Notes: a model not told the origin generated them from the sequence alone. 59,316 nt of DNA from Octopus bimaculoides (GCF_001194135.2 NC_069000.1:47526567-47585882), one strand, 5' to 3'. Shown: positions 6,513 through 11,642, counted from the first letter of the stretch. Numbers and translations are program-made.

Positions 6513-8690
6513 GACTCTGATGAAAAAATAAAATTTTACAGGATAAAAGTTGAAGAATTTCCAAACATGCTGGAAGAATCATTTAGCCTTAAAGTGAATC
6601 TACTTAGTGCCAAGTTGCAAAAAGTTGAAAATGCCTTAAGAAATGAAATTTTGCTTGATTTACAAGAAGAAATTTGCAACCAACATGCTAAAGTCTTTCT
6701 CCTTTGGACTTTACATGAGCAAATATTGGCCAAAGAAATCACCATTGAAATACTGGAAAAAGATCCTAATAACTTGTTGGCGTTAACAAACCAAGCGTTA
6801 ATGTTCCTGCATTATGAAAATTTCCCTGAAGTCGATAGAGTGCTAGAGAAACTGAACACTTTAAAAAACAGCACCAATTTCCCTTCATTAGAAGCAAGAG
6901 GTAAAGCTGAAATTGCCTTTTGCATTTCTAGAATATCTTTTCCCCATTATCAACGTGCTATTGAACTTTTCAAAGAAGCTCTTCAGGTTTGCCCAAACAA
7001 TTATTTTTGGCTTTTTCGCTTGGCTCTGCTAATTTATCGTGGGATAAGGATATTACATGATAAAGAAAAGATGGAAAAATTTTCAAAGGAAGCTACTGAA
7101 ATTCTTCAAAGAATTACTTCAAATTATCCTCATCATGTTAATGATCAGCTAATGGCTAAAACTTTGGTTTTGTTAGGATCTCTTCAAAATATTGCTTTTG
7201 TTCATTCTCGTACTAGGACAACGATTAAATATTTCCAGAGAGCTTGTAGTTTGTTTCCTCAAGACCGATTTGTAATGGAAAAAAGTGCTTCTTTCTATTT
7301 AACAATCGCTAAGTATGAAGATGCACAGAAATTGCTGGAAGAAGCCATTAAAAGGAATGAAACCTCACTTTCACATCATCATCTTGGTATTATTTATAGG
7401 AATCAAATTCCTGGATACAAAGATTTGTGCGTTAAAAAATTACCCTTCTCTAATTGTAAAACACAAGAACTAAAAGAATTAAAAGTCGAAAAACGAATAT
7501 TAAAATGTCCTGAGATAATACCTGATATTGAAAGAAATGAAAGTGTTGATAAGGCTGAATACCATTTTAAAAGGGCTTATGGTCTGGATCCTAGTAATTT
7601 GCATGTTTTGTATGATCTGGCTTTGTTATACAGAAGTGTGCGTGAATACGAAAATGCGATGAAATGTTTTGAAGATATAAACTTTTCAGTTTTGGACATT
7701 TGGGAAAAGATCAAATACTTCATTCAATATGGAAAATTTTGTTTTTTTCTGGCTGATAAAAAAGAAAGTGAAGAAGAGAAACAAGATTTAATAGATGCTG
7801 GTACAGATATGTTTGTCTGTGCCATCAATCATTTATCTGAGATTCTGGTGCTCAATAAAAGACAGAAACAAATTTGGGATATCAAAAAGATAATGAAAGG
7901 AATTTATAACTTTGCTGACACAGAATACAAAAGTAATCTAATGAAATTAATTCAGTCTATAAAAGAATTGCCTGATGAGGGAGGAATTTTCCCCAAACTT
8001 CTCAAAGAATGTGGTGGAAATGAACTTTCACAAAAACTACGATTGTTATGCCGGCAGGAGAAATTTCAACAAGCTTTTTTCCATTTAGAGTTTTCTGGTT
8101 GTCAACAAAGTGAAATTGATGTAGACCTTAGGAAAACAATTTATCTTCAATATGCTAAAGAGTTCTATGGAAAGAGACAGAAGGTAGCTACAATAATTTT
8201 CAAAAAATATTATGAACTTTGCTTTGGGTATTCCCAAGAATCTGGACACAAAGTATGTACACTTAGCTCATCAAAGATTCCTTTTTTTCAATATGATGTC
8301 TACATTTTAACATCAAAAAGTGATAATGGTGATGCTAAACATCTAGCAGAGAGTTTGGTGACATATTTTGGATTGCAAACTAGCTACGGAGACTCTGATT
8401 TCACTCTAGGAATAGGAAAAATGGTAAATGTTCATAAAGTAATGGAAGACAGCTGCCATATTGGAATTTTTTATTCCCCGGATATTTTATCTGAAACGGA
8501 ATATGCCATGGAAATTATGAAAAACCGAAAATTGAAAACTGGGAAGATTTTTCTGATAAATAGTTCTGAGATACCCAAACATTTACAAAGTTTTCCTAAT
8601 GTCGACTACAAGAACAAGAATCACACAGAACTGTTAAGACTCTTTGAATTGCTTTGTTCGTCAGAGATAGATAGAGAGATGGATGGATAA
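6513..8690 (+). CDS. TTC22/IFIT-like tetratricopeptide-repeat protein with C-terminal TIR-like domain; single large coding exon
   Basis: Uninterrupted 2.2-kb frame. A pyrimidine tract plus AG at 6511-6512 (ttctttacccag|GAC) marks the exon start in phase 0, so the TTG at 6441 in the ORF track is probably intronic. First in-frame ATG is 6567 (707 aa). TPR-like helices: DPNNLLALTNQA, AIELFKEALQVCPNNYFWLFRLA, AQKLLEEAIKRNETSLSHHHLGIIYRNQ, AEYHFKRAYGLDPSNLHVLYDLALLY. From 8292 a TIR pattern: YDVYIL...GDSDFTLG...MEDSCHIGIFYSPDIL. AATAAA at 8977. Confidence 0.88.
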   Translation, partial: DSDEKIKFYRIKVEEFPNMLEESFSLKVNLLSAKLQKVENALRNEILLDLQEEICNQHAKVFLLWTLHEQILAKEITIEILEKDPNNLLALTNQALMFLHYENFPEVDRVLEKLNTLKNSTNFPSLEARGKAEIAFCISRISFPHYQRAIELFKEALQVCPNNYFWLFRLALLIYRGIRILHDKEKMEKFSKEATEILQRITSNYPHHVNDQLMAKTLVLLGSLQNIAFVHSRTRTTIKYFQRACSLFPQDRFVMEKSASFYLTIAKYEDAQKLLEEAIKRNETSLSHHHLGIIYRNQIPGYKDLCVKKLPFSNCKTQELKELKVEKRILKCPEIIPDIERNESVDKAEYHFKRAYGLDPSNLHVLYDLALLYRSVREYENAMKCFEDINFSVLDIWEKIKYFIQYGKFCFFLADKKESEEEKQDLIDAGTDMFVCAINHLSEILVLNKRQKQIWDIKKIMKGIYNFADTEYKSNLMKLIQSIKELPDEGGIFPKLLKECGGNELSQKLRLLCRQEKFQQAFFHLEFSGCQQSEIDVDLRKTIYLQYAKEFYGKRQKVATIIFKKYYELCFGYSQESGHKVCTLSSSKIPFFQYDVYILTSKSDNGDAKHLAESLVTYFGLQTSYGDSDFTLGIGKMVNVHKVMEDSCHIGIFYSPDILSETEYAMEIMKNRKLKTGKIFLINSSEIPKHLQSFPNVDYKNKNHTELLRLFELLCSSEIDREMDG

Positions 8691-9030
8691 TTGGAATGAT
8701 GGACGGACGAATGGAGTGATGAACAGATGAATGGATAGGTGGATGCATGCATACATATATACGTATGTATTATTCTTTTCCCTTGAATTTTCTCTGGTAC
8801 TCCATCACTACCAACTTTGCATTATATCATTAATTTTCTATATAATTTTTTTTTATATGTGACTGTGGATTTTCATCGATTAGTTCATGAACTTTGGTTC
8901 TTTTCTCTAAAAGAGACTTTGGTTCTTTTCTCTATTGATATTTTATACTGTGAAACTTAATTTAATTTTAATTCTTAATAAATTGAATTTAATTGAGTTT
9001 TTACCTGTAAATTTGGATTTTTATCCCTAA

Positions 9031-9060
<30 letters not shown>

Positions 9061-9061
<1 letters not shown>

Positions 9062-9801: not shown

Positions 9802-9999
9802 GCTAAATTTCCTTTAGATCTTACCTTACCTTCTAAAAACAAAATAAAAAAAAATACTTAGGTATTGTTGTTGTAGGTTCTTTGCACTGACGAGATGGTC
9901 ACGGCTGGAAAAACTTTGACTTTAATCAAACATCTCCTCTGTCAGGAATAATCTGGAGTTAAACAACAATAGCAATAACAGGAACAATAATATATCGTC

Positions 10000-10019
10000 G
10001 GCATCTCTGTAGTTATGCC
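10000..10019. mobile_element. 20-bp internally deleted copy or footprint of the same element
   Basis: ggcatctctgtagttatgcc, flanked by atatcgtc at 9992-9999 and 10020-10027. Confidence 0.8.
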
Positions 10020-10286
10020 ATATCGTCTACCTTACATTAATAAACTAACATCTTCACAAACTATTTACCTTTCATTGTATGTAATTTAATTAATGTATAA
10101 ACTAATGTTAATTAATTAATTTTTAATTTCTAAAGCAATTTAATTAACTCTACTAATTAATTTATATTTTAATATGAAGTAGTGTGAACCGCACTGAACC
10201 ATGTTCGACTAATTATAAGGTGGTTGTTTTATAACCAATTAACTAATTAAATTGAACACCGTTGTTTTAAAGGGACATTTGCAGTG

Positions 10287-11642
10287 ATGGGTGTTTACAT
10301 TGTTCTCCACGATCCAATTCATGGTTCTGTTGAATTACATCCAGTTTGTGTGACAATTATTGATACTGTTCAATTCCAGAGACTTCGTAATATCAAACAG
10401 TTGGGATTATGTTATTACGTTTATCCCGGAGCCTCGCACAATCGCTTCGAACACAGCATTGGAACTTGTCATCTTGCTGGAGAATTCATTCGACATCTAA
10501 GAAGGCACCAACCCGAACTGAACATCACCGACAAAGACGTATTATGCGTCGAAATAGCTGCTTTGTGTCATGACTTGGGTCACGGACCATTTTCTCATTT
10601 TTTCGACAATCTATTTATTCCCGAAATTGAACCTGGTTCTCAATGGAAACACGAACTCGCCTCCGTTGAAATGTTCCAACACATCTTGAATGAAAACGAA
10701 AGCGTTAGAAACGATTTCCGCAAAGCAGGTTTGGATGGCAAAGATGTAAATTTTATTAAAAATTTAATGAATCCTATTCAGGAATTCGTTGCCAATGAAG
10801 ACCATACAGGTAGAGGTGTTGATAAAGCATATCTTTACAACATAGTTGCCAACAAAGAGAACGGCGTAGATGTTGATAAATGGGACTATTTTGCGAGAGA
10901 CTGTCATCATCTTGGTTTAACAAACCAAATAGATCATAAAAGGATAATTAAATTCGCCCGGGTCCTAACAATAGACGACAAAAGGACGGAAATATGTTTC
11001 AGAGATAAAACTGCACTGAATTTCTACCACATGTTCCGCTCCAGATTTGAACTTCATTGTCTTGCCTATAAACACAAAGCTGTTGCTTCCATGAATGAAA
11101 TGCTGAAAGATGCTTTCGTTCAGGCAGACAACTACATCCGACGGCAGGGGAAATATTTCTTACTTACTCTTTCTAAAGCCAGACACGATATGACAGCCTA
11201 CACCCAGCTCACAGACGGCGTGTTTGACGAAATCTTGTATTCTAACGAAACAAGTTTACAAACGGCAAAAGAGATTTTAATCCGAATACACCAAAGGAAA
11301 CTTTATAAATTTGTGGGTGAGAAATCTTTCAATTGTGAAGTTGATTGTAAAAAGATTCTGCATGAAATCGTGCCAGATGACCAAGAACTTGTCGATCAGT
11401 TGGTTATTTATAAATTCAAGCTTGATTATACGAGCGGAGATGACGATCCAGTTCATAAGATACATTTCTATTCCAAACACTCCGTCAACCAGGTTCTGCC
11501 TCATGTCCAACTGCCTTATTCTTCTGTCATTCCGAAAGCTTTTTCAGAAAGACTTATTTATATATTTTGCAAAAATGATGATTTTCTGGAAAAAGCTAAA
11601 TTTCTTTTTAATTCTTGGTTTGAGAAAACCTGTACAGTTTAA
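10287..11642 (+). CDS. SAMHD1: SAMHD1-like HD-domain dNTP triphosphohydrolase lacking the SAM domain; intronless ORF (451 aa from ATG 10287)
   Basis: Motifs DPIHG, IIDTVQFQRLRNIKQLG, HNRFEHSIG, CHDLGHGPFSH, WKHE, NGVDVDKWDYFARDCHHLG, RFELHCLAYKHK, RKLYKFVGE match animal SAMHD1 catalytic and allosteric motifs. AATAAA at 11865. Confidence 0.95.
   Translation: MGVYIVLHDPIHGSVELHPVCVTIIDTVQFQRLRNIKQLGLCYYVYPGASHNRFEHSIGTCHLAGEFIRHLRRHQPELNITDKDVLCVEIAALCHDLGHGPFSHFFDNLFIPEIEPGSQWKHELASVEMFQHILNENESVRNDFRKAGLDGKDVNFIKNLMNPIQEFVANEDHTGRGVDKAYLYNIVANKENGVDVDKWDYFARDCHHLGLTNQIDHKRIIKFARVLTIDDKRTEICFRDKTALNFYHMFRSRFELHCLAYKHKAVASMNEMLKDAFVQADNYIRRQGKYFLLTLSKARHDMTAYTQLTDGVFDEILYSNETSLQTAKEILIRIHQRKLYKFVGEKSFNCEVDCKKILHEIVPDDQELVDQLVIYKFKLDYTSGDDDPVHKIHFYSKHSVNQVLPHVQLPYSSVIPKAFSERLIYIFCKNDDFLEKAKFLFNSWFEKTCTV

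Follow-up and report, generated by a model that had tools for sequence, protein, structure and literature searches.

Two neighbouring genes in a 59,316-nucleotide stretch of the Octopus bimaculoides genome (hereafter the window; GCF_001194135.2 NC_069000.1:47526567-47585882) are, on balance, probably two independent genes of innate-immunity type that were juxtaposed by lineage-specific events in Octopus, rather than a cassette whose parts co-evolved. Gene 1 codes for a TPR protein of IFIT-like type with a probable TIR-like tail, and gene 2 for a SAMHD1-like HD-domain protein without a SAM domain. An earlier interpretation made from the sequence alone (the sequence-only reading) had joined the two into a functional antiviral cassette, in which the TPR part senses viral RNA, the TIR domain signals or cleaves NAD+ and the SAMHD1 core depletes deoxynucleoside triphosphates (dNTPs), as an animal counterpart of a bacterial defence island. 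The main evidence that speaks for independence is that the pairing is not conserved in the related genomes compared.

The window is part of chromosome CM046620.1 (assembly GCA_001194135.2), ~300 kb from the chromosome end, and has a G+C content of 33-35%. Two plus-strand open reading frames (ORFs), 6441..8690 and 10284..11642, are by far the longest genuine ones in it, the remaining long 'ORFs' all crossing runs of N. The stop codon of gene 1 ends at 8690 and the ATG of gene 2 stands at 10287, so that the ORF calls bear out two co-oriented genes with 1596 bp between them, as the sequence-only reading had described. Its statement that each gene has its whole coding sequence in one exon holds for gene 2, but only nearly for gene 1, whose relatives carry an extra 14-codon exon 1. 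The pair comprises the following features:

6513..8690, plus strand: main exon of gene 1, 725 codons and stop, coding for an IFIT-like TPR protein with a C-terminal TIR-like domain; supported by the ORF, the splice acceptor, Pfam TPR matches and substitution rates
6567-8690, plus strand: annotated coding sequence of gene 1 (P0001), 707 amino acids, starting at the first in-frame Met within the exon
6741..7763, plus strand: IFIT-like TPR superhelix, gene 1 residues ~77-417, from a profile match to IFIT5/IFIT1
8280..8660, plus strand: C-terminal alpha/beta domain of gene 1, ~127 residues, probably a divergent TIR, from PDB profile searches, an AlphaFold2 model and Foldseek
8691..10286, no strand: intergenic spacer, 1596 bp, with microsatellites, repeat fragments and a conserved block, and with no run of N
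10287..11642, plus strand: gene 2, intronless coding sequence of 451 codons and stop, a SAM-less SAMHD1-like HD-domain protein and predicted dNTP triphosphohydrolase core

Among the octopods compared, only O. bimaculoides shows the tight 1.6 kb spacing. In Argonauta hians, genes for Smad, the SAMHD1-like protein and NSMAF/FAN follow one another in this order within 21 kb, all on the plus strand, and no relative of gene 1 was found there at an E-value of 0.01. The SAMHD1-like gene of Octopus vulgaris, at OX597833.1 8,877,280, has two gene-1 copies (A and B) ~68-83 kb upstream on the same strand and no copy within 10 kb; the SAMHD1-like gene of Octopus sinensis, too, has none within that distance. 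A paralogue of gene 1 in O. bimaculoides itself (P0123) is found at the other chromosome end, 47 Mb away, with no SAMHD1-like gene within ~10 kb. The absence of close gene-1 relatives at these loci indicates that the SAMHD1-like gene is older than its present neighbourhood. Microsynteny of the pair, checked in Argonauta, O. vulgaris and O. sinensis, is thus not conserved, and on this point the proposal of a linked sensor-signal-effector module, or defence island, fails.

The functional cassette nevertheless has observations in its favour, and these have to be set against the rest of the evidence. The two genes are co-oriented, 1596 bp apart and uninterrupted by an assembly gap, and order and strand are kept in O. 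vulgaris on a scale of ~70 kb; but eukaryotic genes are not arranged in operon-like units, so adjacency alone carries little weight. Both genes belong to families with antiviral members and have motifs resembling the interferon-stimulated response element (ISRE) upstream, and yet they have evolved at very different rates: the ratio of nonsynonymous to synonymous substitution rates (dN/dS) is 0.08 for gene 2 and 0.23-0.36 for gene 1. Bacterial two-gene systems of a TIR and a TPR protein exist (bioRxiv 10.1101/2023.05.26.542521). In the tail of the octopus family, none of the acidic residues of the helix that follows strand C is invariant. Finally, of the O. vulgaris gene-1 copies, the two that were seen in full have their frames disrupted by indels, 1 in one copy and 3 in the other; the SAMHD1-like gene there is intact. 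Taken with the missing pair in Argonauta, the empty 10 kb around the SAMHD1-like gene in the other two species and the remote paralogue, this makes the cassette very unlikely. A literature search returned no paper on octopus IFIT-like genes or on a pairing of gene 1 with SAMHD1.

Several points weigh against independence of the two genes, or against parts of the account given below. Within one chromosomal block of Octopus, strand and order of the gene-1 family and the SAMHD1-like gene stay the same, and in O. bimaculoides the two lie very close together with no assembly gap between them, so that some loose linkage in function or regulation may exist in this genus. The O. vulgaris comparison left out ~48 kb of the interval from a third gene-1 copy, C, to the SAMHD1-like gene. 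Furthermore, the assignment of the gene 1 tail to the TIR fold stands on sub-threshold sequence scores and a low-confidence model, and the retrocopy origin of gene 2 is drawn from intron loss as its single line of evidence. Two Logan contigs (L004 and L005) are colinear with the genomic DNA and have no poly(A) tail, so they say nothing on splicing or expression.

Gene 2 matches human SAMHD1 chains over residues 6-448 with an E-value of ~4e-123, and the Pfam HD domain is recognised in it at 1.3e-10. Its HD catalytic core and allosteric-site region align end to end with animal SAMHD1, that of human and mouse included; the HD motifs are identical, the allosteric-site region is conserved, and 111 of the 119 near-invariant columns (those at least 95% conserved in 118 homologues) are kept. 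What sets it apart from SAMHD1 is the absence of the parts around this core: it has neither the SAM domain nor the N-terminal extension and, ending near the end of the crystallised human core, no C-terminal tail. A tblastn search with the N-termini of ten SAM-bearing homologues returned nothing upstream of 10275 in the window, nor in the octopod loci. The earlier label of a SAM-less SAMHD1 dNTPase is therefore confirmed as to the HD core and the lack of SAM-coding sequence in the window, with the dNTPase activity a prediction; judged by its sequence, gene 2 would most likely act as a dNTP triphosphohydrolase. This lack is not unusual, since fish, bivalves and cnidarians commonly have SAMHD1-like proteins without SAM.

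Argonauta hians has an orthologue of gene 2 with 64% identity (P0004), and further ones are P0126 of O. vulgaris, P0128 of O. sinensis and P0003 of an Octopus-like Logan sample. These proteins are 446-452 residues long and begin with the same Met, and their genes are intronless. With a dN/dS of 0.08 among the Octopus sequences and 0.15 in the comparison with Argonauta, gene 2 has been strongly constrained; it occurs octopod-wide and is the older of the two genes. The canonical SAMHD1 gene of the mollusc Haliotis asinina, by comparison, has at least 13 coding exons over 20 kb. Because of this contrast between an intronless and a multi-exon coding sequence, gene 2 looks like a 5'-truncated retrocopy, probably derived from a multi-exon SAMHD1 of which only the enzymatic core was kept. 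Two more intronless, SAM-less SAMHD1-like genes, ~50% identical to gene 2, were seen in the metagenome assembly ERZ21867824 (L009 10001-11362 and L010 6612-7976); they belong to an AT-rich eukaryote and have no relative of gene 1 nearby. In other molluscs, oyster SAMHD1 has been discussed as an antiviral candidate (PMC6971885), and SAMHD1 proteins are present in an octopus skin-mucus proteome (PMC11431876).

Gene 1 is a TPR protein, as had been proposed: the Pfam families TPR_14, TPR_1, TPR_19 and TPR_2 match above their cut-offs, and no other domain does. Of the earlier designation as IFIT/TTC22-like, the IFIT part is supported; the TTC22 part stays a proposal, no TTC22 entry having been returned by any of the searches. 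The single protein sequence, compared with the PDB, already finds IFIT1 structures at 7e-4 over 219 residues in nearly identical numbering. A profile built from three sequences (A3: O. bimaculoides gene 1, an O. vulgaris piece and paralogue P0123) matches IFIT5 (3zgq_A) best, with an E-value of 2.7e-11, and IFIT1 at 5e-9, colinear over query residues 77-417; against IFIT5, residues 77-305 align to 82-303 and 327-417 to 302-393. The next natural protein after the IFITs is BBS4 at 6e-6, and the IFITs rank above all other natural TPR proteins. By these matches gene 1 belongs with the IFIT-like TPR proteins.

The likeness to vertebrate IFIT1 and IFIT5 may extend beyond this colinear match, which covers ~340 residues with hardly any shift in register as counted from the N-terminus. 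IFIT genes mostly consist of two exons and lie in clusters of duplicated loci (PMC3584916). The same two-exon organisation is seen in the gene 1 relatives P0002 and P0123, where a tiny exon 1 of 14 codons is followed by one large exon. Tandem duplicates are found in O. vulgaris, whose relative was named 'IFIT1B-like' by NCBI. In gene 1 itself, the main exon begins at a splice acceptor at 6512/6513, a polypyrimidine tract followed by CAG, and position 6513 is exactly where exon 1 joins exon 2 in the O. vulgaris model P0002. Searches of the window by tblastn and blastn did not recover the 14-codon exon 1; runs of N (2799-3501 and 4297-4709) lie at its expected place. Gene 1 differs from the IFITs in its low sequence identity to them and in ~240 additional C-terminal residues, which include the TIR-like domain absent from IFITs.

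With the C-terminal part of gene 1 as query, relatives are few. A HMMER scan of 1.84 billion representative sequences with the C-terminal 296 residues returned just two real relatives, both from Octopus. One is P0123 (XP_014783632), an intact O. bimaculoides protein of 736 amino acids with the same architecture and 42% identity to gene 1; the other is P0002, a 521-amino-acid O. vulgaris model that splices around frame-disrupting indels and has lost the tail domain. A search with the full gene 1 protein returned only P0001 and one O. vulgaris model, and no protein of O. sinensis, with TPR matches crowding the candidate list; repeated with the C-terminal 296 residues, this search gave no match. 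O. vulgaris has at least three tandem gene-1 copies downstream of NSMAF/FAN; the frame-disrupting indels in the two seen in full include single-base changes in short homopolymers, and these copies are either pseudogenes or assembly errors. The dN/dS of gene 1, 0.23-0.36 against the O. vulgaris copies and 0.31 against P0123, shows that the family has been under constraint. The gene 1 family is small and seen so far only in Octopus, and it is probably a young and unstable tandem family.

Such a pattern could also mean that a lineage-specific family is dying out and that gene 1 of O. bimaculoides, as one of its members, is decaying and without function, which would leave the adjacency of gene 1 to gene 2 biologically meaningless. 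The disrupted frames in both complete O. vulgaris copies fit this explanation, as do the tiny family, confined to Octopus proteins in the scan above, and the absence of O. sinensis proteins among those returned. But the O. vulgaris indels could be assembly errors, and the first exon that was not found in the window is missing where assembly gaps lie. Moreover, gene 1 has an uninterrupted ORF of 725 codons in AT-rich DNA, and its dN/dS lies below neutrality even in the comparison with the intact, 42%-identical paralogue. We consider decay of gene 1 improbable and retain the reading of two independent genes.

A few observations on the gene-1 copies are added here. The tandem array of O. vulgaris could be collapsed in the O. 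bimaculoides assembly at the runs of N. The deposited O. vulgaris models in L001 1-4514 and 10001-17231 look distorted, and the 2069-amino-acid O. vulgaris FAN model overlaps gene-1 copy A and may fuse both genes. A dispersed repeat family of ~200-330 bp (window ~16130-16500, 57424-57646 and 58926-59183, and several sites in L001 and L006) flanks the O. vulgaris gene-1 copies and also occurs upstream of the O. vulgaris SAMHD1-like gene. The synonymous divergence (dS) from O. vulgaris differs about threefold between the two genes, 0.13-0.19 for gene 1 and 0.49 for gene 2, with ~0.2 in alignable intergenic DNA.

No TIR, TIR_2 or TIR-like family of Pfam matched the tail of gene 1 or of its paralogue at E-values up to 10, and PADLOC returned nothing for the tail and only a generic TPR model for the whole protein. 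Two other candidates were discarded: an IS110 transposase match in the same Pfam search fell below its cut-off and is spurious, and OCRL, the sole result of a single-sequence phmmer search of the PDB, is a chance match. Family profiles of the tail, run against 177,635 PDB sequences, reached the TIR domains of TLR15/TLR2 (E 0.09-0.14), TLR5 (0.16-0.23) and IL-1RAcP (1.1), all sub-threshold. TIR domains made up both of the two matches at E-values up to 10 in the first search and three of the five in the second, and their alignments share one register, from strand A (Box 1) via the region of the BB-loop (Box 2) to strand C.

Structure prediction may point the same way. An AlphaFold2 model of the tail from a two-sequence alignment has an alternating beta/alpha topology at low confidence (predicted local distance difference test score, pLDDT, 53.8; predicted template modelling score 0.55); run without an alignment on the C-terminal 296 residues, the prediction has a pLDDT of 36.8. 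The best Foldseek match of this low-confidence tail model is the TIR domain of TLR1, at 7.9e-4, and the top matches reach template modelling scores of 0.5-0.62. TIR domains of animal, plant and bacterial origin take up around half of the top 40 places, among them MAL, MyD88, TIR-STING, SPARTA, RUN1, RPS4/RRS1 and BtpA, with flavodoxin-like folds interleaved. Compared with the sequence-only reading, the TIR label thus stands weakened: Pfam gives it no support, and weak PDB profile matches (E ~0.1) and the predominance of TIRs in Foldseek speak for it.

Alternatively, the tail could be another flavodoxin-like alpha/beta domain of obscure role, which would make gene 1 an IFIT-like protein with an orphan tail. 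The silence of Pfam and PADLOC, profile E-values of 0.09-1.1, the low pLDDT and the flavodoxins, PatB and other Rossmann-like folds among the Foldseek matches would all be expected in that case. What it does not account for is that, in the whole set of PDB sequences, nothing but TIR domains matches consistently, three different ones sharing a single alignment register that runs from strand A past the BB-loop region to strand C, and that TIR domains provide the best structural match together with about half of the top 40. We therefore regard a non-TIR tail as rather unlikely, and the profile and model evidence suggests, with fairly good confidence, that the last ~135 residues of gene 1 are a true but divergent TIR.

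Even if the tail is a TIR domain, the further proposal that it cleaves NAD+ with a catalytic Glu is doubtful. The acidic positions in the segment and helix after strand C all vary within the family, with Glu replaced by Lys in O. vulgaris copies and by Gln in the paralogue, the catalytic position itself not being fixed by structural alignment; since no acidic residue there is invariant, NAD+ cleavage by the tail is called into question. Because, in addition, the closest sequence matches are scaffold-type receptor TIRs, a role as a signalling or assembly module appears more likely than NAD+ cleavage.

How might the two genes be regulated? Two upstream blocks are conserved between O. bimaculoides and O. 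vulgaris:

2249..2468, plus strand: conserved block that precedes gene 1, putatively the promoter region in the gene-1 family, ~85% identity to O. vulgaris
9345..9635, plus strand: conserved block upstream of gene 2, 650-940 nt before the ATG, putative promoter or non-coding first exon

The first block is matched by L001 9543-9771 and 22515-22744, upstream of O. vulgaris copies B and C, where its counterpart lies ~230-460 nt upstream of the 14-codon first exon; it contains a one-mismatch ISRE-like element that is conserved in all three. The second aligns to O. vulgaris L006 8752-9058 with 86% identity, and an exact ISRE-like motif lies at 9441-9451 within this block of ~300 bp, the motifs being invariant in O. 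bimaculoides, O. vulgaris and O. sinensis. In the window as a whole, GAAANNGAAAS occurs 13 times (sites include 9136, 9441, 10692 and 12124) against 2.2 expected, a count reached by none of 100 shuffles, although several occurrences are repeat-borne. One ISRE-like variant, GAAACTGAAAG, occurs four times and may be repeat-borne. Because ISRE-like motifs lie in the conserved upstream blocks, both genes may respond to regulators of the interferon regulatory factor (IRF) type; induction of both by such regulators is plausible, if weakly indicated by these motifs.

Within the genus Octopus, this could be taken further, to a co-regulated antiviral unit in which IRF-type elements drive both a TIR-fused IFIT-like RNA sensor and the adjacent SAMHD1 core, with the tail scaffolding or consuming NAD+ and the neighbour depleting dNTPs. 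We hold such a unit to be highly improbable; if true, it would show IFIT-type sensing coupled straight to TIR signalling in an animal. Two further observations concern the DNA upstream of gene 2. A perfect 27-nt inverted repeat with a 5-nt loop (9743-9801), unique in the window, lies ~490 nt upstream of the ATG; the O. vulgaris alignment begins just past it, so it may be specific to O. bimaculoides, and it has no Rfam match. No Rfam family was matched across positions 1-26000 of the window.

Putting these pieces together, we can sketch how two independent genes may have come to lie side by side and what each might do. In the Octopus lineage, the gene-1 family would have been inserted and amplified in tandem between NSMAF/FAN and the SAMHD1-like gene, with some copies decaying. 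Gene 1 would act in the cytosol, its TPR superhelix binding a ligand that could be an RNA end, as in the IFITs, or a protein. Its TIR-like tail would then mediate homotypic assembly or adaptor signalling in the manner of TLR-type TIRs, NAD+ cleavage being the less likely activity. For gene 2, the likeliest origin is retrocopying of a multi-exon SAMHD1 with truncation at the 5' end, and the protein would most likely work as a dNTP triphosphohydrolase. A shared IRF-type response might, tentatively, lead to co-induction of both genes without any biochemical coupling between them.

Combinations of TPR and TIR domains are not new to molluscs. TIR-TPR proteins are a class already named in immunome surveys of oyster and Aplysia (PMC4346834, PMC9334734), and they resemble gene 1, with its probable TIR, in combining TPR repeats and a TIR domain in one cytosolic protein. 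Gene 1 differs from them in that its C-terminal half has no relatives outside Octopus among the representatives scanned, and common descent with the bivalve and gastropod proteins is therefore not supported. Bacterial defence islands, with Thoeris TIR proteins, dGTPase/dNTPase defence genes or the BcTir/BcTpr operon, use the same vocabulary of TPR, TIR and HD-type dNTPase in genes that lie close together. The octopus genes, in contrast, are eukaryotic, with separate promoters and no conserved neighbourhood, and PADLOC knows gene 1 only through the generic TPR model mentioned above. The likeness of the octopus pair to bacterial defence islands is thus an analogy only.

Downstream of gene 2, on the minus strand, lies the multi-exon Smad neighbour noted in the sequence-only reading, which proved to be real:

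20766..33973, minus strand: Smad gene, multi-exon, with MH1 and MH2 domains, tail-to-tail with gene 2; from tblastx to the Argonauta Smad and Pfam

The exon coding for MH1 spans 33374-33973, and the two for MH2 span 22229-22579 and 20778-21146, with Pfam E-values on the exon ORFs of 2.5e-42 for MH1 and 8.7e-37 and 1.3e-23 for MH2. Relative to the SAMHD1-like gene, Smad is oriented tail-to-tail in Octopus and head-to-tail in Argonauta (L003 1-3464), an inversion that indicates a local rearrangement in the block of Smad, SAMHD1-like gene and FAN. Runs of N in the window lie at 20512-20521 and 32789-33340 in addition to the two near gene 1, and L002 889-3434 immediately upstream is a further one; two of them fall where the first exon or first intron of gene 1 presumably lies, and one is inside Smad. 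An ORF of 245 codons on the minus strand (55060-55797) has no Pfam match.

The practical value of this work is mainly negative: that two immune-type genes lie close together in a single animal genome is insufficient to infer a defence island. Each gene has, in addition, its own significance. Gene 2, being intronless, SAM-less and octopod-wide under strong constraint, would be a tidy example of a retrocopy that keeps the enzymatic core only. The usual view of IFITs is that of interferon effectors of vertebrates that have no signalling domain. If the assignment of the gene 1 tail is true, an invertebrate IFIT-like protein with a TIR-like tail would suggest that TPR sensors of the IFIT type can feed straight into TIR assembly. 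Such a protein would echo the TIR-TPR combinations of bacteria and bivalves and add a cephalopod entry to a poorly charted immune repertoire.

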